DNA from: Basidiobolus meristosporus CBS 931.73
Lineage: Eukaryota; Fungi; Basidiobolomycota
Direction of reading: 5' to 3'
Length of the DNA stretch: 64,000 nt
Assembly (NCBI GenBank): GCA_002104905.1
Contig: MCFE01000263.1
Coordinates: 1 to 64,000, forward strand
Made by a program: the position numbers and the translations under genes. Shown piece after piece: positions 19,647 to 63,305 of this stretch (position 1 is the first letter of the stretch; every line of letters begins with the position of its first letter). The notes beneath the pieces were generated by a model. It was not told the DNA's origin. It made no database searches and saw only the letters and a list, made by a program, of their open reading frames with translations.

Positions 19647-19658
19647 TTGGTAGCAGCG
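19647..19658 (+). promoter_or_regulatory. Primer-binding site (tRNA 3'-end type, possibly tRNA-iMet)
   Basis: TTGGTAGCAGCG immediately after the 5' LTR. TGG is complementary to CCA; tRNA identity is not confirmed. Confidence 0.6.
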
Positions 19659-19704
19659 ATAACCAGAAACCTCCCTCCTGAAGAAAGAAGAAACCACCCT
19701 CAAG

Positions 19705-23838: not shown

Positions 23839-25612
23839 TAGGGGAGAATGTTATGATCTGCCGCTTGAATGTTTAAGTTAGATCAGTTTTTAGTCAAATC
23901 AGTTAGTATATGTTTAGGTTATCAGTACATCAGTATTATCTATGAAATCAGTAGCATTAGTCAGCAAATGAATCAGCAGATCCTTATCAGACAGAAATAG
24001 ATATATTAAGTAGGATCTTATTGGGTGATGATGATGCAATCAAATGAGTCATCAGCCACAACCTACATTAGGAAATACAATTAGTCAGCAATTGATCTGG
24101 CAAAATGTATATAAGGAGCTGCTGGAACCTCAATAAAAATCAGTTCAAGTTTTAGTGAATACAATACTAGCTAAACTCCCTATTCCTCTACAACTCTTAT
24201 ACCAAGACTTGTAACAGAGTAGACATTGGAGTTCCTGCCAAGAATGTAATTGACTCACAAGCATCACTCAATACATGTTGGAACAATTTCTCTTGAAAGC
24301 TAAACTCTACTTGGAACTTACCAATTCAACTTCAATTTCAACAGTGTTTATGAACTCTGAGTAAAAGCTACCATAGTAATCAGCTAGTAAGAATAAGGAT
24401 TGATGACTATGAGGAATACTTACAGGCCTTCATATATGGAAACTCCAAATATGACCTAATACTTGAGAAAACGTGGCTATCTTACCATATTCCAATGATC
24501 AACTGGAGAACCTGTGTCATCCAGATTCAAAAGAACAACCAGACCTATGAGCTACTATCAGCCAGGCTGGACTTATACTCATTTAATTTCAGCATGTGGA
24601 CACAAGTGAGCTTAGCAAGACATGGTTCTGTAGAGCATTAAGAAAAGGTGCACAGATGTTTTTTATGGTGGTATTGCTGGACAAATTCCCTACTCCAGTT
24701 CCCCAGATAGTCCAGACTCTTCTGCATGCACATTTGGATATGTTTACAGCTAAGCTTGTAAGTCTACCACCAGTGAGAGCCATGGATCATGCCATTGACA
24801 CAGGAGCCAGCCCCACAGTGAGCAAGACACCTTACAAGATGACTCCATGTGAATGAAGCAAAGAAGAGAAAATTTGATCCACCATAGGGGCAAGGATACA
24901 TCAGGATCAGCAAGTCACCTTGGGTGCACCAGTGCTCTTTATGAAAAAAATAGATAGAACACTTAGGATGTGTACTGACTACAAAGCCCTTAAGTTGGTT
25001 GCTATGAAGAATAAGTATTGTGCATTGTGGGCTGGTAAGCTTTTGGACCAACTCAATGGGGCTATCACATTTAGCAAGATTGTCCTCATGTCAGGATGCA
25101 ACCATATAGGGGTGAAACTGGACAACATCCCTAAGCCAGCATTCTGTACCAGAAATTAATATTTCAAGTTCATAGTCATAAGTGTTGGCTTCACCAATGC
25201 CCCTGCAACATATTGGACCTTGAAGTTAACTGTCTTATGGCATAACTTAGACAGGTATGGGGTAATCTACCTAGATGACATATTCATATACAGCAAGAGA
25301 GCACAGAACTACTGGTGCACATTGAAAAGGTGCTGAAGAAGCTCAGAGAGAACAAGCTACATAGCAAGCTAGCAAAGTGTGAGCTCTTCAAAAAACCTGT
25401 TGAATAATGGGGACACATAATGAACAGCACAGGAGTGAGCTTACATCTAAAGAGAGTGAAAGTTATCAAGAATCTGAGGCAGCCCCATTGCATTTCAAAC
25501 CACATATCATTTCTTGGAATAGTTTCCTGTTGTTGGAGATTTGTCAAGTACTTTGCAAATTTTGCCACCCTTTTGAATAATTTTTCAAGAAAGGCAACAC
25601 CTTGAAGTGGGT

Positions 25613-27594: not shown

Positions 27595-30244
27595 GGAAAA
27601 TAATTTGGTAATGTGGGTGGATCCAATCCAGATCAGCCATCAGGTTCCTGTTTGAAGACCATCAAATACAAGCAGCTTTGAATCAGTGACTCCCTTGACC
27701 ATCTTATAACCAGATCACAATGGCATTTTGCTAATTTTACTGCCAAATAAAGTTACAATACATGACTGGATTTGATTGGTGCTGTGACAATAATTGCATG
27801 GTATTGTTGCAATCTCAATGCACACTGCAACTTTTTCAAATGGATCTAGCCAGCCAGTACATCCAACTCCCTTATATGGCAAAAAGTTGAAACTATCTTG
27901 AGGGCCTCATTGTAAGTCAATGATGGCATTTTCACAGCAGTATGGTGCCCTACAACTATCTTTGTATAATGCTACCATACCAATATACCAAATGGGATTT
28001 TGTATATATATGGAGTAAGTCCCCTGGATCTCATGCATTCAACAGCATAGAACCTTGGCAGAGCCACAAGCTGTCTGTTATGCTCAGGCAGATGAGAATG
28101 TAGCCAACGCAGTGCCCTCAATTGAAGACCAGTAAGTGGCTGTTGCAACATCACCACCACCCATATTAGCAAGCATGTTGTCAGCTCATACCAAAGTATC
28201 AATGATGCAATTAGGTGCAGTGGCTGATAGGATAGATGCAATGGTCCAAGAAGCAAGGAAATAGCCCAGACACAGGATGAGCTGATAATCTGTGTAGAGC
28301 AATCAATATCCCAGGTAGAGAAAGCGGTATCTTTGCTGCAGAGAAGGAACTCAAATAGCTGAATGTACAGCCAAGTATTGAGCTATTTCTTAATGTAACA
28401 GCAGAGGAACACTGTACAGTCTTTGATGTACAACAACAGTCCTCAAAGATAAAGCCCACAGAAGAACCTATCACAGTGTGGGAAGAATAATGTGGTGTTT
28501 ACACTGCCTAAAATTAATTAAATGAGATTGAAGGTATGTCAAGTTATTGAGTGCAATAATGAAGAGTGGGCTAATATTCAAGAAGCCATCAGAAGTCTAG
28601 CATGCCATCACCTTGAGGCCTGCATACCATGGGACTATCAGGAACTCAAGGCCAAGCAGAATGCACTTGACTTGTTCCATGAGCATTATCCTGGATTCAA
28701 GTGGGCAAACAGATTGTGGGCCAGCATTGGTATGCTAAGAAAGTATCTTAAGAATAGCAGAAACTATCAAGGGCAGAAGAACAAGGGTACTATGGCTAAG
28801 GACCAGTGGCTTCCTCAAGTGCCTATTACAAGCAGGGCCAAAAGCTCCAGACAAGTGCCAAAGATATGTCAGGTAGCTGGAAGAATGCCAATCAGGGACA
28901 AGCAGGCAGACACAGATTCACCAGTGCAACATATATCAAGGAAAAAGCATAGTACCATTTCAAGAGGCACTTAGCCAAAGTAGCAGTGAAGGACCTGGCA
29001 GTGATGAAAACCAGCAGCTTTGACAGTAGCCCATCACAACTACAGTTGAGAGCTCAAAACAAGTGGAAAAGAAATGTCAGGTAGCCAGAAGAGTGCTAGC
29101 AAGGGACAAGCAGGCCAAAACAGAAGTGTCTGAGTAGAATTTATCAAGGAGAAAACTTGGTTCTTTACAACAAGCACTCAGAAAAGTAGTAGTGACAGAC
29201 CTGGCTGTGATATAGGAAAAGGTAGAGGAAAAAATGTCTACCCAAGCCTGAGACAAGGAGGCATGCAAAAAAAACTGCAGTTCTTGCTAATTAATGCCGC
29301 AAGCCTGGGACAGATTAGATCTCATCATAGCCTAGAAGAATTACCAACAAGAAAACAGCTGTTTTCACAAGAATTGGAAGTGCAGCCAGTTGAGCTACAC
29401 TCCAGCAAGATAGATGTACTTGCAGAAAATGGCAATTAGTCTACCACAGCCTCCACATCCTCCATTGTTGACAGAGTGGAGATCCCACTGACAGACATGG
29501 CTACAATGTAAAGAGCTCAAAAGACTATCCCAATGCCTTCAGTGGAATTTTGAAACATTAATAGGCACACCAAGAGGTTGCAGCACTTCTTCAATAGCAG
29601 TGCTCAAGAAAACGCACTGGAATATTGCAAGAATTTATTGCAAAGACTGGCAGAAGAGCAGCTAGACCTTGTAGTGCCACCTGAAAACCAGGACATGTGG
29701 GAACCAGTGACTGAACAGTGGCATAAAGCCGTTGGGTTCCTGCCAAAGTTGTGGAACCAGGGTGTTACAGCAGAATTACTTATTGAGTGGGAGATTTTAG
29801 TGGAGTTACTTGTTGAGTGTGGGGTTGGACTTAATGTTTATGCAGGGTATAGAGACTTGTATAGGTCAGTACATTTGGCAATTGAGGTACAACAGAAGTT
29901 TCATTGGAAATAAATCAATTTGTATGTATGAAAAGTAAGAGAAACTGTTGATTCAGGAAGTGAGGAGTGTTAAAACAATGCAATAGCCAATCAATTCACA
30001 CAAATGTAGGAGGTGATAGAGTGTCTGGGATCAGAAAGTGAGCAAATTGGCAGGGAACCAATCAAAAGCCACTTACATATTGTTGTGATGAAAATTTTTG
30101 ACTAAGTTTCTTGTGAAATCCGGGGTGCAATTACTTTTCAATGGTCTCTGGACACTATCCTGACAGGATCAGAACCTCTTAGTCACAGGACTTTAACTTT
30201 GTGATGGCTTTTTGATGGGATCATTACAAAAAATATTTGTAGAG
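27595..30244. mobile_element. Deleted CACTA-like element: transposase fragment (-) fused to companion ORF relic (+), ending in ...TAGAG
   Basis: Minus-strand homology to the CEIHG region of 35975. Plus ORFs 28522-28974 and 29578-29913 recur elsewhere. Terminus shared with 52753. Confidence 0.7.
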
Positions 30245-30430
30245 TAAACTAGCACCAACCCCAAAGGAGACATACCTTGACTTGGTCAACCCTCAACCAA
30301 ATCAAGAGAACAGGGTGCCATCTAAAAGCCCTGACTTTCCTTATCAATCTATTTTAGCAGTCTCATTTATATCATGCTTGGAGCATGTCCAGTTATCTCA
30401 TAGTCAGTGGGAGTTGTCCCCAGGAACATC
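30245..30430 (+). pseudogene. Copia C1 RT-end fragment
   Basis: Homologous to 3810-3980 ([13 protein letters not shown] region). Confidence 0.75.
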
Positions 30431-37737: not shown

Positions 37738-40700
37738 TGATGTAAAATTTGTATTTTGACCTAAATATTCACCTAACTTAGTCACTTAGATCATCACCTT
37801 CATATCCTAGAGAATACTGACCAAAATTCCTTGTTGGGATTTACTTACAATATTTTCACCAAAATACCAGGTACTCAGAACATGAAAATTCTCAAAGTTG
37901 TCCACACAGCCCCAAACTTTGCACACATGTTCTTGGGACCTTCCTTAACCTATTTTACGCATTTGTTATGCCAAGACCAGGTAAAAGTGTAAATGCTACT
38001 TTTACATTCAATAAATCATCAAGTGAAAACCACATAATTCACTTGTCCTCCCAATCACTCCCAATATCCCCAAGACTCTTACAACAGGTTATGAGCCCCA
38101 AGCTGTCACTCTCTGCAATGTCTACTACTGCTATTACTTGAATTTTTCCCTCTGCTGAAAAGTTGGAAGGATCTAACCACCAAGTGTGGAAGGTAAAGAT
38201 GAAGATGCTGCTACAAGAAAGAGACCTTTGGGATATTGTCATGGGAGAAGAATGCCCTCCTAAAAGCATGGGAGAGGAAGCCTTAAAGTACCAGAAGAAA
38301 GAACAAAGTGCCTTTAACTGCATTTGCCTTAATGTTAAAGACAAATTGCTAATTCAATGCTCCAGAGCAAAGAAAGCAAAGAATGCCTGGAAGGCATTAG
38401 AAGTCACCTACCAGTCATGTTCAGCTGCCAAGACAATGTATCTGAGACAAAAATTCTTTACTACAAAGATGCAGCCTGGAGAAGAAATGAAAAATCTAAT
38501 TAACAGAATGACCCTGCTGGTGGATGAGATGGAATCTGGGGGCATACCAACTACTAATGAGGATGTGATAGTTACCATCCTGACTAGCCTGACAGACAGG
38601 TTTTAGGGCCTTGTATCAGCCCTAGAGTCCAGCACTGAAGATTTGACCTTAAATTACATATATGGAAGGCTCCTGCATGAGGAATTAAGAAAATCAAGCA
38701 CCAATAAGAAGGAAGAAGAAAATGCTTTGATAAGCAATGATAACCAACAAAGAAGGTACCCAAGACCCTACAAAGGCAACAGCAACCCGTTTTGTAACTA
38801 CTGTAAAAGGAAAGGACACACATCAGACCGGTATCTCAAAAAGAAAGATAATCAGCAAAAGAAGCCTGAATATGGAAATGCTCCAACAACTGAAGATATA
38901 CTATTCATATCTGCACTAAAAGTGACCACAAACAAGGATTCTCAGACATGCTATAATGACTTTGGAGCATCTCTACACTTTACACACCAAAAAGAACTTT
39001 TTACCCAATATTAAGAAATTCCAATTAAGAAGGTTTTCATGGGTGACAATAGAACACTTGATGCAGTGGGAGAAGGAACTATCCAAGTAAACCTAAGAAG
39101 CAATGCAGGAAGCCATATACTGACCTTTAAAGAAGTACTCTATGTACCAGAAATAGCCAAGAGCCTACTATCTGTCAGCAAGGTCACTGCAGATGGACTC
39201 AATTTCAGCTTTGACAATTCAGGATGCAAGATCACTGATCAAGATGGTGCCCATATTGCTTTGGGTATCAGAGATCAGAACCTATACATGTTGACTTATA
39301 TTCCATCATATTTGGAAGCCAATAAAAGTAACTCAAATGAAGAAACACCAATGCTTTGGCACAAGAGACTTGGGCACATCAATTTTGATTATTTGTGCAA
39401 AATGATCAAAGATCAGCTAATTTCTGGAGTGAAAACTGAGGGTGTAACCAATTTAATTGGATGGGGATAAGAATGGGATGGACATGGATAGTTTAGTGGG
39501 ATATTTTTTAAAAGGCAGAGGACTCTACAACTGTGGTCAGCCAGAATCAGTGCCCAGGAATATTGCAGAAGTGATCATTCCAGTATCATATGCCCAGATA
39601 TCCAATTGGACAAGAAATAGCCCAAATTACTATATCAATGAGGGTACAAACTTAGCCTATGCCTATTCAGTCCATATTGATGAATCCCAGACTGTAAAAG
39701 AGGCCCTAAATAGCCCTCAGACAAAGTTTTGGAGATCTGCAATGACTGAGGAATATCAGGCCCTGATGGAAAATCAAACTTGGGACTTAGTCAAATTACC
39801 AATCAACCAAAAATTAATTGGATGCCGATGGGTCTTGAAGACAAAATACAAGGCCAAAGGTACAATTGAAAGATACAAAGCAAGACTTGTAGCCAAAGGA
39901 TACTCTCAAACAAAAGGACTTGACTACACTGAGACCTTTGCACTGGTAGTCAAGTTTAATTCCATCAGATAAATATTGGCTATTGCAGCCAAATATAACT
40001 TTTCTATTGATCAAATGGATGTAAAAACTGCATTTTTGAATGGAGAACTTGATGAGGATGTGTATATGGACCAGCCTGATGGGTTTGTTGACCAAGATAA
40101 CCCCCATTTGATCTGCAAGCTTAAAGAGTCACTATATGGTCTCAAACAATCACCAAGAGCCTGGAATTGCAAGATAGATTCTTATTTGGAATCTTTGAGT
40201 TTCAAAAGAAGTAATGCTGACTATAGTATATACTCTAAGCCAGGTAGAGCAAATCCAGTTCCATTAGCTCTATATGTGGATGATCTTATTATAGCCACCA
40301 ATAACCTAGAAACATTGGAAAAGACTAAATCCAGCATATCTAAGGAGTTCAAGATGTCCAATCTAAGAGAACTTAATTACTACTTAGGGATTAAGTTCTC
40401 CATAGACAGAAGTACCCAGACTATCACTGTAAGCCAATCCAAGTATATTCAAGATATACTAAAGAAGTACAAAATGGAAGACTGTAAACTGGCAGCTAGC
40501 CAAATGGATATAAACCTTAACTTGGTCAAAACTCAACCAAATCAAGAGAGCTTGGTGCCATCTGAAAGCCCTGACTTTCCTTATCAATCTATGGTCAGCA
40601 GTCTGATGTATATCATGCTTGGAACACATCCAGATATCTCATATTCAGTGGGAGTTGTCAGCCAACATAATCAGAACTATGGATCTGATCATATTGCAGC

Positions 40701-41617
40701 AGTTAAGCAGATTTTTAGATACCTAAAAGGAACTGCTGATATCTGCTTAAGATACACGTATAAAGATTCAGAACAGGATCTTGTGTGATACTCTGATGCT
40801 GATTGGGGACAAAACTTAGAAGACAGAAGATCCACCACAGGATACACCTTTTGTTACTGTAAAGGAGCAATTTCATGGAATTCAAGAAAGAAAGCAACCA
40901 ACCGTAGCACTTTCCACCACAGAGGCAGAGTATATGGCAGCCTGTGAAGCTACAAAAGAAGCAATGTGGTTAAGAAATCTTTTTACTGATTTAGGCCTAT
41001 GTCAAAAAACACCTATTACTTTATTTCAAGATAATCAAGGATGTATACAATTAGGTAGAAATCCAACTTTTCATGCTAGAACCAAGCCCATAGATATTAG
41101 ACATCAATTCATATGTGAAGATATAGAGAATAACTTAGCTAGCTTAGTTTACTGTCCTATAGATGAAATAATTGCAGACATATTTACCAAACCATTAGCT
41201 AGAGACAAGTTTGAATATCTTAGATCAAAATTAGGACTAGTCAGTATGAACATTTAGCTGAGTGGGAGTGTTGCAAAAATTTGTATTTCCACCTAAATAT
41301 TCACCTAACTTAGTCACTTAGATCATCACCTTCAAATCCTAGAGAATACTGACCAAAATTCCTTATTGGGATTTACTTAAATTATTTTACCAAAATACCA
41401 GGTACCCAGAACATGAAAATTCTCAAAGTTGTCCAAACAGCCCCAAACTTTGCACATATGTTCTTGGGACCTTCCTTAACCTATTCTATGTGTTTGTTAT
41501 GCCAAGACCAGGTAAAAGTATAAATACTACTTTTACGTTCAATAAATCATCAAGTGAGAACCACATTATCTACTTGTCCTCCCACTCACTTCCAATATCT
41601 CCAAGACTCTTACCACA
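37738..41617 (+). mobile_element. Copia C1 element, both LTRs, 5-bp TSD AATGG, integrase core deleted
   Basis: LTRs 37738-38086 and 41269-41617; PBS GGTTATGAGCCC; gag, protease, RT (270-aa open piece with YVDD) and RNase H fragments. Confidence 0.95.
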
Positions 41618-42862
41618 AATGGGACAATCATAGGGTTTATGTGCTGGGAATAGTTCTCTTTTCTTCATATCAAAGACATGGACATGCCCTTAATACTTGG
41701 CAGGTAGTTCATTGGAGGGGGCTCCTTCAGTGATGATGGGCTCTGGGGTCTGGTGTAGCTTGGGAAAATATACTTCTTCACCTGAGAAGTCAGGTGCTTT
41801 CATGGAGCTGACATGGTGAACTCTAAAGAATGTCAGGGTTTTGGACTTCCTGTTTATAGCAGGGTTATGGTTTTTGTAATTACTGAATTGTCATCTAAAT
41901 ATTCATGCTAACTTAGTCACATAGATCTTATTCTGTGATTAGCATTTTGTCCTGACTAGATTTCTTGTTGGGATTTACTTAGAATATTTTCACCAAATTG
42001 TCAGGTACCCAGATTATTATTTTTCTCAGAGTCATCCAAAAGACCCCAAACTTTGCACACATATTCTTGGGACCTTCCTTAACAAACTCTACACGTTTGT
42101 TTCCTCTACTTTATCAAAAGTATAAATACCATACTTTTGATCAATAAATCTACAAGTGAATAACATGAAATCCTCTAGTTCTCCACATCACTTCCAATAC
42201 TCCTCAGAATATTGCAACAGGCTATGAGCCCCAAGCTCACTGTCCTCTTGGTGTCTATTTTGCCTTGTACTCTTTTTCTGCTAGTCTGGAGAAAGACTTT
42301 CCGCACTATTGCCCTGCTAAGGCTAAGAAGACTACCGCTGCTAAAGGACTATGTTTATGAGGATATTGCTGTGGAGAAGAAGGCCTTGCCTTCAAAAGAT
42401 ACCTTCAATAACTACTCAAGCTAGTTATGAAGAAGAGTCAATCAAACTGGCATGTAATTATATCAAGAAATATAGTACATTGGTGCACTACCACTACTGA
42501 AGAGAATTGGGTAATTCCAGCAATTGAAGGGTTCAGATCTACAATGAAATATACTGCAATATGTATTCATATGACCCATATTGACTGTTAGACAAGTTTT
42601 GGATAGGATATTATCCTGAATTGCAAAAAAAAATAGATCATCATTGAATGATTGCCCAAGGGGAATCTTACCAAAATCTGTTGCCACTCAAAATACAGCT
42701 GAGAATGCAAGTACTGGAGTTGTTAACCGCCATTCTGGACTATCTATTGATGGAAAAAGATCTCAGAAACAATCTCCCTGAACTGTAAGGATCCCAATGA
42801 TATATAATACATATATATTCACCTGGAGTATGGATATGTACTACACAATCCATTGGAAGAAT

Positions 42863-44105
42863 TGTGGTAATGGAAAGTATTCCATTACTACAATATCTCT
42901 AAACCAATATTGCACTCATTTCTTTATTTTGCTTTTTGCTATCGTAACACACAAAAGAAAGATCAAGAATTTCCAACTTTGAAGAGCAAATGCTCCAGAC
43001 CCTGACAAGCAATCCACCCAAGAATATTATGTCATACAGAGCACGTAGTAGCCAACACATGTTTCAAATTACAGCTCATTTGAAGCAGTACTTAAGGAGT
43101 TATGACCAAAAGAGTCCAACTATTATATATACTATGCCTTATTGCTAGGATTACTATGGTGACTTTGATCGCGTGTAACTTTTGAACCAGCCAATCATAT
43201 CACGTGAAATTTTCACAGGTGCTGCGCCTATGTCCGATCTGCGCCACTGCAAAATTTTAGCTTCGTATCACGTGTATTGCTTGCGCAATCGCCCAAAAAC
43301 TTTGATCCTTCAAAATTTTCATATATATGACTTCCCCAGCTGAAAAATAAAGGGAGAGCCTCTCTTTCCAGAATCTCCACACTACAATTACAAGTTTAAA
43401 GGTTATAAGACTTCCCCTGCATCACTTGCACTGTTGAGTATTCTGACTTTGATTGGTACTACATCAGTAAAGAGACTGCAAAGCTCACAAGAATCCAATC
43501 TAAGTTCTACAAGAAACTACCACTTTTCTGTTGGAAAAGTCCCCTCTAAGAAACCCCTTTACTCTAAAGACACCCCTTTAGACACCCCTTTAGTCTAAAG
43601 ACCCCTTTAGAGACCCCTTTAAGAAACCCCTCTACTCTAAAGAAGCCCCTTTAGGCACCCCTTTAGTGTAAAGTCCACTTTAGAGACCACTACAAGAAGC
43701 CCCTTTACTCTAAAGACACCCCTTTAGACACCCCTTTAGGTCTAAAGACCCCTTTAGAGACTTCTACAACACACCCCTTTAGGTTAAAGGGGAGTTCAGA
43801 ATTTCCATATTAGGAAATATTTTCTCAGAAAGGAAAGTGACTTCCAAATAAGGAAAAGTTACTATAAAAGTAAATAAGCCCATTAGTCGACAGAAGGTCA
43901 GAACACTGCTGTAGAAGTGATAAACACTGCCTAAAGTATATTTTGAGCCCAAGATTGAGGAAATTAGTGAAAGTTATATCTTCTATCGGTATATCAAACT
44001 CCCAATAAGCTATTTCAGTATTAGCATACTGGAAGTTGTTGTATATTGTTGATTAGCCTCTACATTGTAGAACAAGCCCCAAACTAATCATAATACAACA
44101 CAACA
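42863..44105. mobile_element. 1243-bp TG...CA insertion with 4-bp TSD GAAT (probable solo LTR of an unseen Ty3 family)
   Basis: GAAT|TGTGG...CAACA|GAAT. The second cargo copy has the empty site TTGGAAGAATGCTGTAG. Confidence 0.8.
43540..43792. repeat. Tandem array of (A)CCCCTTTAG motifs in ~72-bp higher-order units
   Basis: About 14 CCCC runs; three units starting AAGAA(A/G)CCCCT at about 43549, 43621 and 43694. Confidence 0.9.
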
Positions 44106-47100
44106 GAATGCTATAGTTGTATCAAGTGTTTTGATACTGAAACCAGTGTACCAGGAGCTAAATATGGGGCCGTTAGACGTGCTATCACTCTGTTTAAGTC
44201 TCAAAACAGTGGGAGATAGTATTATACAAATTTAGCAAAATCAACTCAAGAAGATTCTACCGCCAGCCAAAAGAGTGAGGCATATAATTGCAAGCCTGAT
44301 TGGAGTATACAACCAAGCAACAGTTGGTCAGTACACAGCTAAGAGCCACTCAGAAGATAACATAGTACTTTATACTTCTTATATATATATCACTTATTAC
44401 AGTGGGAGAAAACACTTGGTGATATTTAACTTCTCTGGATCATATCAGAGGAATTTTGATTGATCAAGTCACTGCCAAGCTCCGCAACTCAAAATACTGA
44501 TATATTGGAGTCTGATATCAAAGTATTGATGAAGCCAGCTATCAAATGCAATTTATTTGATCAAATTTGGTTGGCTCTATCAAATGTTATGACTGATCTA
44601 AGTGGATGCCAATTTTGATTATTTCACTCTCAAATAGTCAGATATTCTAGAACAATAATGTCATGGAGACTCTTGTGCTTAAAAACACCATGGTACCACC
44701 TACAAGGAAGTCCAGAATCACCCCACAAAAGGAATTATCCCTGGGTCATCAGCAGAAAAAGAAAAGAAGAAAAAATGGAATATACTAATACCGCAAACTA
44801 GGGTACTTCCCAAATGAAGCCAAAGCTTATGTAGGCCATATTTGGACTATCTGGCAATGCAGATATGTTCTATGGAGCCTCTTGTACAAAGTTCTCAAGC
44901 CAGAAACCCCAGAAAAGTCTTGAAATTTCAACAGGATCTGTCAGATATTGTAGTATATATTTGAACAGATTATTTAATGCAGAAGTCTTGATGTCTGCTG
45001 TCTATGGAGCTGAAAGAAAAAGGTGCAAGGATCAACCAGATGGTTTTTATGAATTCTGAAGACACTGAGAAGATCAGTTAGCCTTGGAAACCAAGCTCAA
45101 GGTTCAAAATAACTATCAGGAGAATAAGGATAATCAAAGCCCTTGTTAAGGAGAATCTCACTTCTGGAAAAGCGCCAATCTCTATTCTACAAGTATATTC
45201 TGATAAGACAAAAGCAGCTGTATCAATCCAAATCAGTAGAAGCACTCTAAAAATAGCTATCAAATAACCTATGGTGTTGTCCAATACCAAACTGGGTAAA
45301 TCAAGAAGCAAATGGACTTTGAATCTACCGCAAATGAAGTAATCAGTCCAAAGAAAGTTATTGCTATTGAAAGAAGACAAAGATGACCATTCTAGATCCT
45401 ATTTGTGGATCTGAATCACTAAACAGACGTGGTTCAAGTGGGAGCAGGCCATCTCAGCTCAGAGTTGAGCAAAAACCTTCTTTTTTGGCCATGCTATATG
45501 TGCCACAATGCCAGGAAACAAGGATAATCCAGATCAGGCGTAAATGACAAAACCTTAACTTGACCCAAAGTAGGTCACTATTTTTTACCTCATATAGCAT
45601 CTATATGATGGAAGTAACTGTCCCTGAGCCTAATATGGACACACAGTGAAGTTGTCTAAATGGATTAGACTGCTGGCTGGAAATAAGGAAACTCCAGATC
45701 TGCCGTAAATGACAAAACCTTAACTTGACCAAAAGTGGGTCAATTTTGCTCAAATAAGAAGCATTGGATAGCCCAGAGGCTAAATACCATTATTACAATC
45801 TGTCAATTAGACTCAGTCTATTATTCAAGCCCGTACAACTGATCAAAGTTGATGATTAGTATTATGATCAGATCATTCAAATTTTTTAGGCATATTGCTA
45901 AGTAGATGTGCATATTGAATTCCAAGTTACTTGTTCAATTAAGTTAAGCACAAATGCATACACTGTTGGATAAAATATTAGTCCAGTATGCAACACAGTT
46001 AAATCTTATAAGCTTATTACACATTGCACACTCTCAATATGTATTTATTACTCATGAATATTTTGTTGCGTAGGAGTGTTGTAATTATTGAATTGTCACC
46101 TAAATATTCATGCTAACTTAGTCACATAGATCTTATTCTGTGATTAGCATTTTGTCCTGACTAGATTTCTTGTTGGGATTTACTTAGAATATTTTCATCA
46201 AATTGTCAGGTACCCAGATTATTATTTTTCTCAGAGTCATCCAAAAGACCCCAAACTTTGCACACATATTCTTGGGACCTTCCTTAACAAACTCTACATG
46301 TTTGCTTCCTCTACTTTATTAAAAGTATAAATACCATACTTTTGATCAATGAATCTACAAGTAAATAACATGTAAATCCTCTAGTTCTCCACATCACTTC
46401 CAATACTCCTCAGAATATTGCAACAATGGTGACTATGCAATGAGCTTCCAAGGACTATGGAGTAGTGGGGAGAGTTGATGATGTTGAAGGCTATTGTCTC
46501 ATGGTGACCAGTACTGGACAGCTGGAGTAGACAGGCCTCATGGGTAATGGCACCAGAGGAAAGGGATCTTCCATCAATAACTTCTACTTGAACAGGACAG
46601 GATTTCAGGATAGTGGGGATCTTGTGCTTCTGGACAAGGGACTGGTCAATGAAACAGGATGAAGCACCAGTATCTATGAGGGCAAGGACATGGACAGGAC
46701 TGTACTCAGGGATATGGGTTTTGAGAGACATTCTTAACAACTGGATGGACTTGGTAGCATATGATGTTTCTTGTGTGTGTTGAATTTTCTTTGGAGGGTC
46801 CAGTTGCAAGCCTGTCATTTTAACTGGACACTGGAGTTTCCCAACAATTCTAGAGAAGGCTGCTCACTGGATGATTGCAGGAGTTTGAAGCTGAACTTCT
46901 TGTTGGGACAAGACATGGCAAAGTGGCCTGGTTGGCAACAGTAAAGGCAGAGGTTTGCTGTTGATGTCTGGATCTTTCTTCTTTTGCAAGTTTCTTGTAT
47001 TTGGCACTGCCAATTTGTATAGGATTATCAGGCTTAGTACTTGGTGACTTGATTACTGGCAAGGAGGCTGGCTGATAAGTATGTTGGAGCTTCTGTTTCT

Positions 47101-48860: not shown

Positions 48861-49810
48861 ATGTCATGGAGCAAGTCAGGTGCATTCTGCTTGGCCTTGA
48901 GTTCCCAATGGTCCCACAGTATACTGGTCTCAAGGTGTTGGTGTGCTAAACTTCTAACAGCCTTTTGAATGTTAGCCCACTCTCATCATTGCACTCAATG
49001 GCTTCATGGATCTCCAATGTCTTTTGATTTTTAGGCTTTGGTATACACTCTACATTTTGTTCCTCCTTTGCAGTAATAGGTTTTTCTGTGGGCTTTATCC
49101 TTGAGCACTGTTGTTGTGCTTCAAAGGCTGTACAGTGTTCCCCTGCTGTTACATTGGGAAATGGCTCAATTCTTGGATGTGATATTGAGCTACTAGAGTT
49201 CCTTCTTTGCGGTATAGATAATGCTTACTCAATATGGGATATTGATCTCTCTACATCTTTTGTCTGCTCATCCTGTTTCTCGACTATTTCCTGATCACTC
49301 TGGGCCATTGTATCTATCCTAGCAGCCACTGCATCTAATTGCCTCATTAATGCTTTGGTATAAGCTGAAAACATACTTGCTAATACTGGTAGTGGTGATG
49401 TTATGACAACTACTTGCTGGTCTCTGGCTGAAGGTAGTGCTCTTGCTACATTCTTATCTGCCACAGCAACTTGGCCAGCTTGTGGCTCTGCAGAGATTCC
49501 CAATAGCCAACTTAACTGAGAGCCTTAGAAGTGCACATTATTACCTTTAGTGGACACACTGTCCACTGAGTCTTTTTTAGTTGTAGCTCCGCTTGCTGCA
49601 CAGTATGTCAAAGCAAGCTGTTGTCTAACCATTCTTCTGCTGCTGTCAGTGGTGGTGTTTGGTTGGGAACCATGCAACTTTGCTTTATTTTTTGGCAGCA
49701 TATATATGGAAGTGAGTCAAACCAAAGGGGAAATGGTGTTACATATACAGATGTTTGTGGTGCCACAACTTTATTTATAATGCTCACTATGGCAGGTCAT
49801 CATTGAATCT
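48861..49810 (-). pseudogene. CACTA companion ORF relic, 5' half plus promoter region
   Basis: Homologous to 33050-33390 and 34130-34720, without the P5 insertion. Confidence 0.7.
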
Positions 49811-49825
49811 AACACTCCAGAGATT

Positions 49826-50270: not shown

Positions 50271-52753
50271 ACTGATGATTGGTCAAAATATTACTTGTGT
50301 GACAAAACATTATCCATGAGCCTTGTAATACTTGCTTTGCTGCCTGCATGCTTCATGGCTGAGAGGCTTGTTACAATAGCCACATGGTCTTTTTTCTCTT
50401 TTCCAATGGCATTGAATCAAAGTAGTCTTCTCCATGGGGCAAACAGCTTGACACTCAACAATGTTACGCTATTATAGCATTTTTCTGTTGATACTTGTGT
50501 GCATTTAAGAGAGTCTTGTATTTGAAACATTGCTCATATGTGAATGTAAAATTCAATGATGACCTGCCATAGTAAGCATTATGAATTAAGTTGTGGCACC
50601 GCATACACACATATATGTTTTTCTATTTCCACTTTGGTATGACTCACTTCCCTATATATGCTAACAATAAGTAAAGCAAAGTTATCTGGTTCCCAACTAA
50701 GCCCCACTGTTGACAGCAGCTGAAGAGTAGCTGGACAACAGCTTGCTTTGACATTCAGTGCAACAAGCAGGGCTGCATCCAAAAAAGGCCATGTGGACAG
50801 TGTGCCCACCAAAGGTAATAATGCAGACTCCTTGGGCTCTCAGTCAAGTAGGCAGATTAGAACCTCTACAGAACTGCAAGCTGACCATAATGCTCAGGCA
50901 CATGAGAATGGAGTAAATGCAGTACCCTCTGTTGAAGACCAGCAAATGGCCAACATAACATTACCACCACCCATATTGCAAGTATGTAGTCAGCTCATAC
51001 CAAAGCATTGATGAGGCAATTATGTGCAGTACCTGATAGGATACATGTTATGGCCCAGAGAAGTCATCCAATGTTCCTGAAACAGGATGAGCAAATACCC
51101 TAAATTTCCTAATGTAACAGCATAGGAACACCTTTCAATCTTTGAAGCACAACATTAGTGCCCAGAGATAGAGCCAACAGAAAAGCCTATCATAGAATGG
51201 GAGTGAGAGACTGTGGTGCTTATTCCCAAGCCTAAAAATCAAAAGACATTGAAGATCTGTGAAGCCATTAAGTGCAATGATGAAGTGTGGGCCAATATTC
51301 AAAGGCTGTTAGAAGTCTAACATAGCATAATCTTAAGGCCAGCATGCCATGGGAACATCAGGGACTCATGGCTAAGCAGAATGCATCTGACTTGTTCCAT
51401 GAGCTATATCCTAGATTCAAGCAAGCAAACAGATTTTGGGCCAGCATTTGTATGCTCAGAAGGTATCTCAAGAATAGCAGAAACTGTCAAAGGCAGAAAA
51501 CAAGGGTGCCACTGCTAAAAACCAGCAGCTTCCTCAAGAGCTTGTCACAAGCTTTGGCTGAAAGCTCTAAACAAGTAGTAAAGAAACATCAGATAGCTTG
51601 AGGAGTGCCAGTAAGGGACAGGCAGATAGAAACAGATGTATCAGTGGAGCATTTATCAAGGAGAAAATGTAGTTCATGACAAGAAACACTCAGTCACAGT
51701 AGCAGCAAAGGACCTTACATTGATAAAACCTGCAGCTTTCTCAGGCACTCATTACAAGCAGGGCTAATAGTCCCAGACAAGCAATAAAAAACATTAGGTA
51801 GTCAGTAGAGTGCAGGCAAGGGTCAAGCAGGCAAAAAGAGATGCTTCAGTACAGCATTCTTCAAGGAGAAAACAAAGTACAATGCAAGAAGCACTGATTT
51901 AAAGTAGCAGTGAAAGACTTGGCAGTAATAAAGGTAAGGGTAAAGAGAAAAACATTACCCAAGCCAGAGAGAGGGAAGTATGAGAGAAAAGCTGTAGTTT
52001 GCACCAGTTAATGCCATCAGCCCAGAATGGGCTGAATCTCCTCATAGACACAAAGAATGCCCAACAAGACAAAAGCTTTTTTCTCATAGGTTGGAAGCAC
52101 AGCCTGTTGACCTACACTCCAGTGAGGTAGATGAGTTTGCAGAGAAAAGCAATTTGTCCACCACTGCCTCCATTGTACACAGAGAAGAGATCCCACTGAC
52201 AGACAATGCAACAATGTCAAGTACTCAAAAGACTATCACAATGCCTGCAGGGGAATTTTGGGGCATTAATAGGCCACCAAGAGGTTGCAGCACTTCTTCA
52301 TGAGCAGTGCTCAAGAAAACTCACTTGAATATTGCAAGTATTTATTGCAAAGACTGGCAGATGAGGTACTAAACCTTGCAGTACAAGCTGAAGACCAGGA
52401 CATATAGGAGCCAGTGAATGTACAGCGGCATAAAGCTGCAGGATTCCTGCCAAAGTCATGGAAAAAGGGTGTTCTAATAGAAATATTTACTGAATGGTGG
52501 ATTCTAATAGTGTTACTGGTTGAGTGTGGGGTTGGGCTCAATGTTAGTTTTGGGTATAGGGACTTGTACGGGTCAATGCAATTATAATTGAGTTGTAACT
52601 GAAGCTTTAATTACTAATTTTTTTTAATTTGGGGTGCAACTATTTTTCAACAGTATTTACATGGTGTACTGACAGGATCAATATCTCTTAGACACATGAC
52701 TTTAACTTTGTGATGGCCTTTTGACAGGATCATCACAATTATTATTCATAGAG
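50271..52753. mobile_element. CACTA-like element: transposase 5' end (-), promoter, companion ORF (+), terminus ...TAGAG
   Basis: 50271-50700 is the reverse complement of about 34550-34990. ORF pieces PWEHQGLMAKQNASDLF...YLKNSRN. Terminal block matches 30110-30244. Confidence 0.72.
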
Positions 52754-54253
52754 TAATCAAAATTGGCATCCACTTAGATCAATCACAACTTTTGTTGTAG
52801 GTAAACAAATCTGATGAAATATACTGTATTGAACACCAGTTTCATTGGAAATTTGGTATAAGGCTCCAATATTTTAGTATTTTGAGGTGTAGAGCTTGGC
52901 AGTAACTTAATTAATGACAGTTTTCCAGACTTGTTCCATAGTTACTTAATACCACCAAGTGTTTTCTTCCACTGTAATAAATGATATATTAATCACAAGT
53001 ATAAAATATTATGTTTTCTAATGAGTGGCTCTTGGTTGCATATTGGCCAATTGTTGCTTTGCTATATACCCCAATCAGGCTTGCAATTGTTTGCTTCAAT
53101 CCTTTTGGCTGGCTGTATTACTTTCTTGAGTTGATTTTGCTAGACTGGTATAATACTTTCTCACATTGCTTTGATACTGATAGAGAGTGACAACATGTCT
53201 AACAGCTTCAACTCTTCCTCCTAGTACATTGGTTCTGGCATTAAAGTGCTTAACACAACTACAGCATTCTTCCAATCAATCATGAAGCCCATATCTGTAC
53301 TCCAGGTGGATATATATGTATTACTTGTCATCACAACTCTGCCAATTCAGGGAGCTTGTTTTTAGGATCTTCTTCCATTGATGGGTAGTCCAAATGGCAG
53401 CTAACAGCTCCAGAATTTGCATTCTCAGCCTTATTATGATTGGCAGCAGATTTAGGTAAAATCTACTTCCAGCAATCATTCAGTAATGATATATTTATTT
53501 TGCATTTCAGTAAAATAACCTATCAAACACTTGTCTGACAGTCAAGTGGGGCTATATGAGCACATATATCAGTATGTTACAACTTAGATCTGTATCCTCA
53601 ATTGCTGAAATTACATATTCTCCTTCATAGGTGGTAGAACATCATCATGTTATATTTCTTGACATATTTACATGACATTTAATTGACTCTTCTTCATAAC
53701 AAACTTGAGTACTTAGTAAGAGCAACTTTTGAAGGCAAGGCCTTCTTCTCTGCAGCAATACCCTCATGACTATAGTCCTTAAGCAGTGGTAGTCATCTTT
53801 GACTTTAGCAGAGGAATAGTGCCAAAAGTCTTCCTCCAGACTAGAAGCAGTAGATCTAAAAGTAAAGCTCACACCAAGAGGAAAGCAAGCTTGGTGCTCA
53901 TAACCTGTTGCAATATTCTGAGGAGTATCAGAAATGATGTGGAGAACAAGAGGATTTTCCTGCCATTCACTTGTAGATTTATTGATCAAAAGTATAGTAT
54001 TTATACTTTTGATAAAGTATGGCAAAAGACTGTGTAGAGTTTGCTAAGAGAAGTCCCAGTAATATGTGTGCAAAGTTTGGGGTTTTTTGGACAACTTTGA
54101 GAAATGGCATAATCTGGGTATCTCATATTTGGTGAAGATACTCTAAGTCAATCCCAACAAGAAATTTGGTTAGGGCAGATTGCTAATCATGAAATAAGAT
54201 CTATATGACTAAGCTAGCATAAAAATCTAGATGACAGCTTAACAATTACAACA
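52754..54253 (-). mobile_element. Second, 3'-truncated copy of the cargo-carrying copia-LTR element
   Basis: LTR 53906-54253, PBS GGTTATGAGCACC, then collinear with 42220-42862 plus 44106-44620 until cut by the CACTA end. Confidence 0.88.
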
Positions 54254-60356: not shown

Positions 60357-63305
60357 ATGGCTAGTCTGAAGCGTGGCAGGACCCTCACCCGGCCTGATCG
60401 CCTCCATGCCCCGGCACCGATGCTGAGCGGCCAGGATGAGCGCAGATCGCTGGATCCTTGGGTGCTCTTCTCCAAAATCACGACCTTCTGGGCCCCGGGG
60501 TTTGTTCTGTCCAAGATGGGCATGCCCGAGCTGGCCAGCCGTCAGGCGTGGAGGGAGAAGGTAGCCCTTTGCTGGATCATCGCGCTGATCGGCGGGATAG
60601 TGGCCTTTCTGACCCTGGGCCTGCCGCACGTGTTTTGTCCCCCGAGCGCCATGACGAGTGTGGAGAATTTTGTGCAAGTGAGCTCGGACGTTCCAGGTAA
60701 CATTGAGTGAGAGGCCTATCTGTTGCTGCAACACTAACCCGTTCGTGGTCTAGGCTTGGTCGGGGTGAACGGATTCGCATACTCCGCCTCGTCGGCGAAG
60801 AACGAGCTGAGCCGCTTCCCTTCTGGCTCGGACATCAGCAGCCAGTTTCTCCATGGCTCCAACGTGGAGGCCTGCCGGGACCCATCCATCAGCGGCTATT
60901 CGTCTGTTCAATACAACCCGTGTACCGCCAAAGAGGAGAATCCGGGCTGCCCGCTTCCTCCGATCGAAGAGTCCGCGGCCACCTACAACCTGGTCCCTAC
61001 TGGTAGAAGGCTGGGCTACGACTGGGTCGACATCCCCAAGAACTCCTTCGTCATCGACGGGAGCATCCTCAACCTCACCCCATATATCAAAGCGTTCCCC
61101 GCTGCCACCCCCGAGGATGTTGTGGATGGCGCCATCCGGGAGGTCATCGACAACGGCATCACTGACGCCACCCGCGTGTTTCTTCGCAGACCAGAGCTGA
61201 TCGCCTCCATTCCCTGTCTAACCGGGAAATACTTCGCCGGCTCCTTGAGCAAGTCAACGCCCGGTTGCTTCGGGGTGAAGCTTTTCTTTGTGATCTCCAT
61301 GGTGATCATTCTAGGGATCGTGTTGACCCGGTTCTTCATGGCTGTCCTGTTCGACTGGTTCCTTTCGTTCAAGCTTGCCCGTCCACCAAGGCTTCAGCCG
61401 AAGCACATCATCGGCACCAAGTCCGCCCCGTGGGCCAACGCCGGCGTCAACACCGAGATAAAGCAGATCCAGCTCGATTCCAACGAGCTGTTCACCGTGT
61501 TGCTGGTCACCTGCTACTCCGAGGGGGAGAGCTCGCTGAGATGCACCATCGAGAGTCTTGCCGCCACCGAATACAGCGATGACCGCAAGCTTCTGTTCAT
61601 CATCGCCGACGGCATCATCACCGGAAGCGGGAACGAGAAAAGCACACCAGACATCTGCGTAGACATGGTCGAGCTAGACCCGCTCTACACGGACCCTGAG
61701 CCCCAAAGCTACATCGCGGTTGCCTCTGGCGCGAAGCAGCACAACATGGCCAAGGTGTATGCCGGGCATTTTGTCCACGCCGGGCACCGTGTCCCCACCG
61801 TGGTCGTGGTGAAGTGCGGCGCGCCCGAGGAGCAAGGAAAGCCCAAGCCGGGCAACCGGGGAAAGCGGGACTCCCAGCTGATCCTGATGAATTTCTTCAG
61901 CCGGGTGACATTCAACGACCGCATGACCCCTCTCGACTATGACCTGTTCACCAAGATCCACCATCTCACCGGCGCCACCCCCGACTACTTCGAGATCGTG
62001 CTCATGGTGGACGCAGATACCAAGGTTTATCCGGACTCCCTGAGGCTGCTTACCAACTGCATGATCAACGATCAGATGATTATGGGCCTGTGCGGAGAGA
62101 CCAAGATTGCCAACAAGCGAGACTCGTGGGTCACGGCCATCCAGGTGTTTGAATACTACATATCCCACCACCTGGGCAAAGGGTTCGAGTCCATATTCGG
62201 AGGTGTCACCTGTCTGCCCGGTTGCTTCTGCATGTACCGGCTGAAGGCACGCAAGGGCGACAGTGACTGGGTCCCGATTATCACCAAGCCCGAGATCGTC
62301 CAGGAATACTCCCAAAACGAAGTGGACACCCTGCACCAGAAAAACCTCCTGTTGCTGGGAGAGGATCGCTTCTTGACCACACTAATGCTGAGGAACTTCC
62401 CCAACAGAAAGATGATGTTCATGCCTCAGGCGATTTGCAAGACGGTCGTTCCGGACGAATTCAGCGTCCTGCTTTCACAGCGGCGCCGTTGGATCAACTC
62501 CACCATTCATAATCTTATGGAGCTTGTGCTGGTCCGAAACCTGTGCGGAACCTTCTGCTTCTCGATGCAGTTTGTCGTGGTCATGGAGCTCATCGGCACG
62601 GTATCGTTGCCGGTGGCCATTGTGATGACCTACGTGCTGATATACTCCATAGCAACCACCACCTTCACCGATGCAGCCAGCTACTACCCGCTGATCCTGC
62701 TGATCCTCATATTGTTCTTGCCCGCGGTCCTGATCTTGCTGACCACCAGGAAGCTCATCTATATCGCATGGATGTTGGTCTATCTCCTGGCATTGCCAGT
62801 GTGGAACTTTGTTCTTCCGGTGTACGCCTATTGGCATTTCGACGACTTCTCCTGGGGTGAGACTCGAAAGGTGGCTGGGGAAACCAAGGAAGAAGACCAT
62901 GGCAAGAAAGACGGGGTCTTCGATTCGAGCAAGATCACCCTTCGTCGGTGGGAGGACTATGAGAGGCGCCGTCTGCGCAACGACAAAGACGGGGCCCACG
63001 GCTCGCCGTCCTTCGGGAACGGAATGGTGGCACAGAACAGAGCGAGCGTTTATTCACAGCCAGAATTCGACGACAGGATCTCGGAGAAGGGCCTGATAGT
63101 GCATAACAACGCGCAAACCGCATCCTGGTACATCCAGGAGGAGTATGACTCCTCTAAGGGAGAGCCCAGCCATGGCGACCAAAACGAGGGCTTTGATCCA
63201 GTCGTCCAGCCCACCGCTTACGATGGAGCAAACACCATTCAACCTCAACAGCATCGTCTCCATGGACCAAGGCCCCAACCGCAAAGGAGAAACCGCCAGA
63301 AATAG
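60357..63305 (+). CDS. CHS3: Chitin synthase, division 2 (class IV/Chs3-like, no myosin domain seen)
   Basis: TLTRPDR and AWREKVAL N-terminus, [44 protein letters not shown]. Intron 60697-60753. The class assignment and start codon are tentative. Confidence 0.92.

Follow-up and report, generated by a model that had tools for sequence, protein, structure and literature searches.

The window analysed here, a stretch of 64,000 nucleotides from contig MCFE01000263.1 of Basidiobolus meristosporus CBS 931.73, contains an LTR retrotransposon unit, E1, at positions 41872-46425. E1 is 4,554 bp long as found, and approximately 3,307 bp when a nested insertion is subtracted. Its 5' LTR (41872-42219, plus strand) has 348 bp and its 3' LTR (46077-46425, plus strand) has 349 bp, with an identity of 97.1-97.4%, bearing out the 348/349-bp pair proposed in the first-pass annotation of this DNA. 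The LTR termini are T(T/G)TTG...CAACA; the 3' LTR begins with TG, the 5' LTR has TT at this place, and both finish with CA. The pentamer ATGGT is read directly in the sequence to the left of the unit (41867-41871, plus strand), and an identical copy lies to its right (46426-46430, plus strand). The structural features of an LTR retrotransposon, paired LTRs with TG...CA-type ends and a target site duplication (TSD) of 4-6 bp, are thus both present. The unit lies inside a Ty3/gypsy element on the minus strand, whose aspartic-protease region (Pfam Asp_protease_2) occupies 46426-46818 and continues at 41618-41871; an exact-protein look-up with the gypsy ORF returned nothing on record. A paralogue of this host element begins at 4932 on the plus strand, and its segment 5140-5360 is unbroken across the insertion point and has a single pentamer. 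Together, the TSD and this empty paralogous site show that E1 integrated as a single unit into the gypsy element, generating a 5-bp duplication, as had been claimed earlier from the perfect ATGGT repeat.

The interior of E1 has 3,857 bp, of which 1,242 bp belong to the nested insertion. The approximately 2.61 kb left after removal of 42863-44104 agree with the ~2.6-kb interior, a later solo LTR excluded, that the first reading had given. Four segments can be distinguished, all listed on the plus strand. Segment A (42238-42862) is common to a second copy of the element, E2, with 81% identity. It is followed by the solo-LTR-like insertion B (42863-44104), which is absent from E2. Insertion B begins with TG, its end reads CA or AC according to the placement of the repeat boundary, and it is flanked by a 4-5-bp duplication (AGAAT/GAAT, at 42858-42862 and 44105-44109); from these termini and the duplication it is probably an LTR. 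Its 3' end recurs on another contig (L003, 1-58, 88%), where the similarity ends at the same terminus, and a 73-bp tandem repeat of about 3.4 units lies within it (43538-43790, plus strand). Segment C (44105-44621) is again common to E2, with 78% identity. Segment D (44622-46053) is seen in E1 alone: neither the window nor 147 kb of other Basidiobolus loci contains a match to it, it has no Pfam match and no protein homologue, and its stop density is near random. Since it is known from E1 alone, segment D may include further nested material.

Two defective copies of a Ty1/copia family, C1, are found in the window, one of them next to E1. This copy, C1b (37738-41617, plus strand), has LTRs 89.7% identical, a 5-bp duplication (AATGG), and Pfam matches to gag, Pol_BBD, pre-integrase and RVT_2 with E-values of about 1e-11 to 1e-49. 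Its gag-pol region (38118-41254), treated as one broken gene, has by approximate count at least three in-frame stops, at least two frame changes and one deletion of ~0.8 kb that removes the integrase core. The second, C1a (528-4931, plus strand), has a truncated 5' LTR and matches to gag, Pol_BBD, pre-integrase, rve, SH3 and RVT_2, in copia order; its gag-pol (634-4503), likewise treated as one broken gene, has about nine or more in-frame stops and four or more frame changes, also approximate counts. Beyond the window, we sampled about 134 kb of B. meristosporus (six loci) and 12.8 kb of B. ranarum (one locus), reached via chitin-synthase paralogues. From these loci came several C1-like LTRs and the E-type solo LTR described below, and a further C1-like copy was found (L008, 1841 to about 6230). 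Neither the window nor the sampled Basidiobolus loci revealed an intact autonomous partner.

Comparison of E1 with C1 reveals a set of shared cis sequences. Directly after the 5' LTR lies an 18-nt block resembling a primer binding site (PBS; 42220-42237, plus strand), which is the same or differs by 1 nt in C1a (603-620), C1b (38087-38104) and E2 (53888-53905), so that E and C1 agree at 17-18 of 18 nt. Its four occurrences in the window compare with 0.1 expected by chance, and each directly follows a C1- or E-type LTR. A candidate for the copia-type PBS claimed earlier is in place, in the sense of a block common to the gag-pol-encoding C1 copia. No tRNA gene was found in the window with ARAGORN, nor in the other sampled Basidiobolus loci. 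At the other end, a polypurine-tract (PPT) region (46054-46076, plus strand) precedes the 3' LTR; the similarity to C1 begins here, before the LTR, with 46054 aligning to 41246 and 4561. The LTRs of E and C1 are 66-70% identical in global and 70-75% in local alignments, and the three blocks that had been reported as shared are conserved columns of this alignment, which confirms the observation. Besides the PBS and the PPT region, E and C1 have in common the termini TGTTG...CAACA and TATA-like and AATAAA blocks. A relic of a C1-type gag N-terminus, of about 80 bp, was also identified at 42319-42398 (plus strand). It aligns with C1b 38190-38266 at 56 of 82 positions, and both sequences lie ~100 bp from the end of their LTR; the score of the local alignment has z = 7-8 and was reached by none of 500 shuffles. 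This similarity is at the DNA level only, the score at the protein level being not above chance. For segment A beyond 42400 and segments C and D, local alignment scores against C1 interiors are within the shuffle range, and a few short collinear blastn matches to the C1 interior were rejected, with E-values of 0.04-0.9. The LTR blocks, PBS, gag-start relic and PPT place E by descent in Ty1/copia; this membership is read from cis sequences, as E1 has no copia-type reverse transcriptase (RT) or integrase (IN) of its own.

E2 (52754-54253, minus strand) is a truncated copy with one LTR (53906-54253), the PBS (53888-53905) and part of the interior (52754-53887). It is collinear with E1 41874-42862 and 44105-44621 at 77-86% identity (~80% overall), through the LTR and segments A and C, as the first-pass annotation had noticed; the LTR is 86% identical, and segments A and C are less conserved (78-81%). 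The flanks of E2 differ from those of E1, it abuts another repeat at 52754-52756, and it has no 3' LTR. A solo E-type LTR, 89% identical and with its own duplication (CTAAC), is present on contig MCFE01000908.1. Three separate E-type insertions have thus been seen: E1, complete; E2, truncated; and one solo LTR. Neither a second full copy nor a further copy of the E interior was found in the 147 kb of sampled Basidiobolus DNA, and pattern scans of metagenomes for further copies gave 0 matches.

The coding capacity of the interior was analysed in several ways. In each of the six frames the number of stops is close to the mean of the shuffles, and the longest open stretch, of 106 codons on the minus strand, lies in a part of the interior absent from E2. 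The sole candidate in the part common to E1 and E2 is an ORF of 66 codons (42224-42424, plus strand), probably the non-retroviral ORF of the first-pass annotation, which in our judgement is no gene: it starts with the ATG contained in the PBS block, it overlies the gag relic, its frame closes early in E2, 1-bp indels run through it, and it has no Pfam match. Its sole match in a library of 1.84 billion representative proteins was rejected as a repeat-inflated artefact. Differences between the E1 and E2 interiors have no codon periodicity, and 23 of 25 indels are frame-shifting; in segment A, also without periodicity, none of the 20 indels is a multiple of three. The G+C content of the interior is 36-38%, a composition like that of transposable elements, against ~57% in host genes. 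Pfam searches with 20 open stretches (16 from the interior proper and four from insertion B) gave nothing significant, with matches below the curated cut-offs and to unrelated families. Large protein databases were searched with three of the 16 stretches of the interior proper, the other 13 being covered by Pfam only; at this coverage, neither host-gene homology nor a conserved ORF, the marks of a gene-capturing retroelement, was found. The stretches of 106 and 75 codons had no homologue in the large protein searches. A stretch of 81 codons had one match, P0121 (E = 5e-11), rejected as chance: the P0121 gene model comes from an unrelated assembly and covers a 104-bp satellite with some 30 repeats, it has no DNA similarity to E1, and its score is the sum over six weak repeats. 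A tblastn search for a divergent gag-pol, with the gag-pol pieces of the window and a C1-like copy in better condition (L008, L009) as queries, matched only translated LTR in E1, while the same queries match C1a and C1b at 70-90% identity. Pfam on open stretches and local tblastn therefore agree with the earlier statement that gag and pol motifs are missing from the interior, as no RT, IN or gag domain was found.

Taken together, E1 is best read as an ordinary hitch-hiker LTR retrotransposon, a copia derivative of the LARD/TRIM continuum whose interior has been replaced. We consider it highly likely that E1 is a copy of a non-coding, non-autonomous family of B. meristosporus that descends from a C1-like Ty1/copia and carries no cargo gene. 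The family would have kept the cis parts only, that is the LTRs, the PBS, a 5' leader of ~180 bp with the decayed gag start and the polypurine region, and its gag-pol region would have been replaced by ~2.4 kb of non-coding sequence. E1 was already non-coding when it inserted, because its own LTRs differ by only ~3% with no trace of a domain, whereas those of C1b differ by 10% and its domains are still detected; the same non-coding interior is present in E2, elsewhere in the window. Transcribed from the 5' LTR, the E RNA would be packaged and primed at the shared PBS, and an autonomous C1-like copia would supply the proteins for its reverse transcription and integration. The shared PBS type suggests, by analogy, priming by a fragment of the initiator tRNA-Met, the mode reported for copia, Ty5 and fungal copia. 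Such a scheme is the standard model for LARD/TRIM-type elements. Mobilisation in trans is here suggested by the shared cis sequences, and the C1 of this window may be a cousin and only possibly the actual helper, because the LTR identity is only ~66-75%. After insertion, E1 would have received the solo-LTR-like insertion B and decayed neutrally since. From the earlier inference, the non-autonomous character, the integration as a unit and the C1-related family are retained, given the TSD, the empty site, the shared cis blocks and the three insertions; the captured gene is not.

Other readings of the interior were weighed. The ~2.4-kb core could be non-coding host DNA, such as a lncRNA or a regulatory segment, that was transduced and is now carried and spread by the family. 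Alternatively, the family could represent the first large non-coding copia parasite to be characterised in Zoopagomycota, its helper having LTRs diverged by ~30%; if true, such divergence would be informative on the minimum of cis sequence that a helper must recognise. We regard both proposals as improbable. Very improbable is the proposal that the LTRs transport a captured host gene of non-retroviral type, spread by the family. An ORF of 66 codons does follow the PBS, and the ~2.4 kb of interior dissimilar to C1 interiors could have originated as foreign DNA. That ORF, however, starts at the ATG of the PBS, ends early in E2 and lies over the gag relic, and the interior begins with decayed copia sequence and not with foreign coding sequence. 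With no frame depleted of stops, no codon-level constraint, no Pfam family, no real homologue in protein searches with three of the open stretches, and a G+C content far from that of host genes, the version with a coding cargo is largely refuted, and the first-pass picture of an element spreading a captured gene is not upheld.

It is hardly credible, in turn, that E1 inserted as an autonomous copia and that its gag-pol has since become unrecognisable through decay. The gag N-terminal relic and the fact that every copia copy in the window is defective would fit this history, but an LTR divergence of ~3% is far too small for the erasure of ~4 kb of gag-pol, older C1 copies are still clearly recognisable, the interior without the nested insertion has only 2.6 kb, and the non-coding interior is shared with E2, which split off long before. 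A chance bracketing of unrelated DNA by two independent solo LTRs, or through an assembly join, can practically be dismissed: E-type solo LTRs exist and the region is a dense transposon nest, but the outer pentamers are identical and the paralogue has one, the PBS and PPT region lie directly inside the left and right LTRs, E2 repeats the order LTR-PBS-interior, and the window sequence is identical to the public contig.

As a non-coding copia derivative, E can be compared with known systems. TRIM/LARD-type elements, which have a PBS and a PPT where E has the corresponding blocks, likewise have two LTRs and a TSD without coding capacity, LTR similarity to an autonomous family with a coding relic, and truncated copies as well as solo LTRs. 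Plants are the source of most families described, whereas E is from an early-diverging fungus. E1 exceeds the strict TRIM length (under ~1-1.5 kb) at 4,554 bp or ~3,307 bp, and exceeds the strict LARD length (>4 kb) only through its nested insertion; at ~3.3 kb without it, E1 falls in the gap between strict TRIMs (<1 kb) and LARDs (>4 kb). Non-coding LTR elements form a size continuum dependent on partners, in which the range of 1.5-4 kb is unnamed (PMC13570524). Partner-dependent non-coding LTR elements are thus a described class, and the earlier suggestion of an undescribed system is not justified. The C1 copia resembles E in its TGTTG...CAACA termini, LTR blocks, PBS, PPT region, 5-bp duplication and first ~180 bp of interior, but encodes gag-PR-IN-RT where E encodes none; at 66-75% LTR identity it counts as a relative that may or may not be the helper. 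The fungal Helenus TRIMs and Cassandra (PMC10886601) are also non-autonomous, linked to copia by their PBS and flanked by 5-bp duplications, and the anticodon-loop tRNA-iMet type of PBS is reported to be dominant (PMC10886601). They are short, with tRNA- or 5S-derived sequence in the LTR, whereas E is several times longer and has no tRNA or Rfam match. An LTR derived from a small RNA, as in these elements, was considered for E and rejected, with no tRNA gene in the window (ARAGORN) and nothing in Rfam at E <= 1 except a chance miRNA fragment. TR-GAG or gag-only elements (named in PMC13570524) derive, like E, from an autonomous element by loss of pol, but E has only the ~80-bp gag DNA relic and no open gag frame. 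Gene-transducing LTR retrotransposons such as maize Bs1 resemble E in lacking pol and in having a non-retroviral interior, but theirs contains recognisable host gene fragments; for E no host homologue was found with Pfam or in the large protein searches with three open stretches.

The analysis removes a false lead, since E1 has no cargo gene and represents no new system, and in this respect it carries little weight beyond annotation. It adds a clear non-coding copia derivative from an early-diverging fungus whose transposons are hardly curated. The 64 kb record a series of an autonomous-type copia, a non-coding derivative and a truncated copy, with a solo LTR on another contig, which is useful for a Basidiobolus repeat library. 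The series also indicates which cis parts survive the loss of copia genes: the termini, the TATA-like and AATAAA blocks, the PBS, the ~180 bp leader and the PPT.

The family E, represented in the window by the element E1 (41872-46425, plus strand) and by a truncated second copy, E2 (52754-54253, minus strand), has cis sequences in common with gag-pol-encoding copia and carries no genes of its own. E1 is bounded by a 5' LTR of 348 bp (41872-42219) and a 3' LTR of 349 bp (46077-46425), which share 97.1-97.4% identity. Both LTRs end in CAACA; the 3' LTR starts with TGTTG, and one base of this start is changed in the 5' LTR. The host of E1 is a minus-strand Ty3/gypsy element, with its protease region at 46381-46818, and ATGGT is present at both outer ends of the insertion. 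The plus-strand paralogue of this gypsy element (5140-5360) is unbroken across the insertion point and has a single pentamer, representing the empty site. The flanking ATGGT pair and the empty paralogous site therefore establish that E1 integrated as one unit, as the first-pass annotation had proposed from the LTR pair and the perfect 5-bp duplication; this duplication is as long as that of C1b (AATGG), a member of the Ty1/copia family C1.

Immediately inside the 5' LTR of E1 is an 18-nt PBS-like block that differs by 0-1 base in the two C1 copies C1a (528-4931, plus strand) and C1b (37738-41617, plus strand) and in E2, always at the same position; the block occurs four times in the window, versus 0.1 expected. 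At the other end, similarity between E1 and C1 begins within the polypurine region, 23 bp upstream of the 3' LTR. Alignment of seven LTRs identified as conserved columns the three blocks already noted as common to E and C1, together with TATA-like and AATAAA blocks. The LTRs of E and C1 are 66-70% identical when aligned globally and 70-75% when aligned locally.

The interior of E1 is interrupted by an insertion of 1,242 bp (42863-44104) that is missing from E2. It starts with TG, ends with CA or AC depending on the assignment of a one-base overlap, and is flanked by a 4-5-bp duplication. Its 3' end was found again on another contig (L003, 1-58), where the similarity breaks off at the identical terminus. 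The insertion is a nested repeat and most simply a solo LTR, and the TG start, the duplication and the recurring terminus fit the later solo LTR that had been suggested here. A 73-bp tandem repeat of approximately 3.4 units, 79-88% identical, lies within it (43538-43790). Without the nested insertion, the interior of E1 is ~2.61 kb and the whole element ~3.3 kb.

The first-pass annotation had assigned a non-retroviral ORF to this interior, a claim that does not survive analysis of its coding capacity. The longest open frame, of 106 codons, is on the minus strand of the E1-specific part. Stop counts in the six frames of segments A (42238-42862), C (44105-44621) and D (44622-46053) are close to the shuffle means and never fall under the lowest shuffle, so no frame resembles a decayed long ORF. 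E2 is collinear with E1, as had been noted, matching 41874-42862 and 44105-44621. The sole ORF candidate in this shared part has 66 codons (42224-42424); its start is an ATG within the PBS block, carried also by all C1 copies, and in E2 the frame is closed within a few codons, with 1-bp indels cutting across the aligned ORF. The sequences to the left and right of the nested insertion were compared separately; the identity between E1 and E2 is 86% in the LTR, 81% in segment A and 78% in segment C. Mismatches favour none of the three codon phases (p = 0.37 and 0.58), and of 25 interior indels, 23 have lengths not divisible by three; the interior therefore evolved without coding constraint, slightly faster than the LTR. 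Its G+C content (36-38%) resembles that of other transposons and differs from that of host genes.

Homology searches were also negative. Comparison of 20 open stretches with Pfam gave sub-threshold matches only, all to unrelated families. Using tblastn with all gag-pol pieces of the window and the better-preserved C1-like copy (loci L008 and L009, outside the window), no match was found in the E1 interior; the same gag-pol queries match C1a and C1b at 70-90% identity. Large protein searches covered three of 16 open stretches (106, 75 and 81 codons), the remaining 13 being compared with Pfam only. A word-indexed search of 5.8 billion proteins gave no match for the 106- and 75-codon stretches. 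For the 81-codon stretch, an exhaustive search of 1.84 billion representatives returned a single match, P0121, a protein of 877 residues from an unrelated assembly (L002, 3001-6323; GCA_019364655.1, JAGXCG010013450.1). It was rejected as a chance match, having no DNA similarity to E1 and a score summed over six weak repeats. P0121 is an annotation artefact, a gene model over a 104-bp satellite of approximately 30 repeats, and such models can yield false significance in protein searches when scores are summed over repeats. No small-RNA-derived part was identified with Rfam or ARAGORN.

The absence of genes could reflect decay after insertion, a divergent gag, or an element that was non-coding before it moved. 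LTR divergence since insertion is ~3% for E1 and ~10% for C1b, and the Pfam E-values of C1b are still ~1e-11 to 1e-49; because the older C1b remains recognisable, post-insertion decay cannot account for the missing genes. The divergent gag, named in the first-pass annotation as an alternative, holds for one relic of ~80 bp only. Multiple alignment downstream of the PBS suggested that E1 and C1 are similar over a longer stretch than blastn had detected, and local alignment confirmed this: E1 42319-42398 matches C1b 38190-38266 at 56 of 82 positions (z 7-8, equalled by 0 of 500 shuffles), both lying ~100 bp from the LTR end. The C1b stretch belongs to the N-terminal gag coding region, where DUF4219 and Retrotran_gag_2 were matched. 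The protein-level similarity is not beyond chance, and 42319-42398 is therefore a relic in DNA and not a retained reading frame. For the rest of the interior the gag reading fails: the similarity of the ~2.4 kb core (42400-42862 and 44105-46053) to C1 interiors is within chance, and the rest of the window and a further 147 kb of Basidiobolus DNA contain no match to it. To the extent that sequence alone can tell, E1 was non-coding already when it moved.

E2 has an LTR 14-17% different from those of E1, other flanks and the identical type of non-coding interior. A solo LTR at locus L007 (20557-20886, minus strand; contig MCFE01000908.1) represents a third E-type integration, 89% identical to the LTR of E1 and bordered by a perfect duplication, CTAAC; it adjoins C1-like LTR fragments (21177-21401 and 21953-22324). 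From the earlier proposal of a copia-LTR shuttle, we retain a non-autonomous family that integrates as a unit with C1-related cis parts; the spreading of a captured gene is not supported, as the interior has no conserved ORF and gave no homologue in the Pfam, tblastn and protein searches above.

The first 54 kb of the window are filled by a transposon nest with ~38-42% G+C, and host genes follow from 55.9 kb onward with ~57% G+C. The step in G+C content is sharp (~38% to ~55% at ~54.3 kb), and no transposon lies between the E2 LTR and the host genes. The host genes encode a NIF phosphatase, a TCP-1 chaperonin and a class-IV-type chitin synthase (60756-63305, an ORF of 849 codons); in B. ranarum (locus L006) the order of TCP-1 and chitin synthase is as in the window, and the upstream genes are different. 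The closest database relative of the chitin synthase, at 98% identity, is a protein of Basidiobolus meristosporus CBS 931.73, and its contig (MCFE01000263.1 of GCA_002104905.1) matches the window at 100% identity across 13.6 kb in identical coordinates, which places the window at bases 1-64000 of that contig. One terminus of the repeat family R (51311-52756, compared with 28591-30247) coincides exactly with the truncation point of E2 (52754-52756), so the rest of E2 was removed by R or by deletion at its edge. A large inverted duplication is also present (48864-49817 and 50542-51402). The minus-strand gypsy copy (36.8-48.8 kb) has both C1b and E1 inserted, with 254 bp between them, and the plus-strand paralogous copy, from 4932, has C1a inserted at a different site, which shows that copia-type elements nested repeatedly in one gypsy family. 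A third C1 fragment (9325-9761, minus strand), which comprises the PPT region and LTR of the 3' end, is 80-86% identical to C1a and C1b. The youngest element in the window is a Ty3/gypsy element (19279-24216, plus strand) whose 368-bp LTRs are 100% identical; it has the 4-bp duplication GAGT and a single unbroken gag-PR-RT-RNaseH-IN ORF of 1,377 codons (19705-23838); an exact match to its protein is absent from the gene-position index. A second, unrelated copia family (12038-16439, plus strand) has 377-bp LTRs, 96.6% identical, and a gag ORF of 280 codons with a zinc knuckle (12450-13292).

From what is established for LTR retrotransposons generally, we infer that E would be transcribed from its 5' LTR and its RNA packaged in particles of a helper copia. 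Minus-strand priming would occur at the PBS and plus-strand priming at the polypurine region, both common to E and C1, and the helper integrase would recognise the shared termini and integrate E. Read as its reverse complement, the PBS block includes a CAT triplet, whose context would fit the anticodon loop of tRNA-Met. In Drosophila copia and yeast Ty5 an initiator tRNA-Met fragment, cleaved within the anticodon loop, serves as primer (PMC5371799); in fungal copia and the dependent Helenus elements this type of priming is reported to be dominant, and Helenus has 5-bp duplications (PMC10886601).

C1a has its domains in copia order (gag, protease-type beta-barrel, pre-integrase, integrase core, SH3, RT), a truncated 5' LTR and approximately 13 interruptions (at least nine in-frame stops and at least four frame changes). 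By approximate counts, C1b has at least three in-frame stops, at least two frame changes and one ~0.8-kb deletion taking out the integrase core. Among the C1 copies in the window and sampled loci, no intact helper was seen. On other contigs, the C1-like copy at L008 (1841 to ~6230, plus strand) is less damaged and retains open frames of 489, 275, 127 and 355 codons, and another is found at L009 (15440-22116, minus strand). The LTRs of both are 70-75% identical to E, no nearer than C1a or C1b. With ~70% LTR identity to E, C1 may be only a cousin of the element that would serve as helper.

LTR elements without coding capacity that have retained LTRs, PBS and PPT, in some cases with coding relics, are well described; their sizes range continuously from TRIM (<1 kb) to LARD (>4 kb), and the 1.5-4 kb range is without a name (PMC13570524). 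At ~3.3 kb without the nested insertion, E sits in this unnamed range. Unlike Helenus and Cassandra, its LTR has no small-RNA part; unlike TR-GAG, it has no open gag; and the hallmarks of gene-transducing elements are absent. E is best placed in the described class of non-coding LTR elements, here in an early-diverging fungus, neither animal nor plant.
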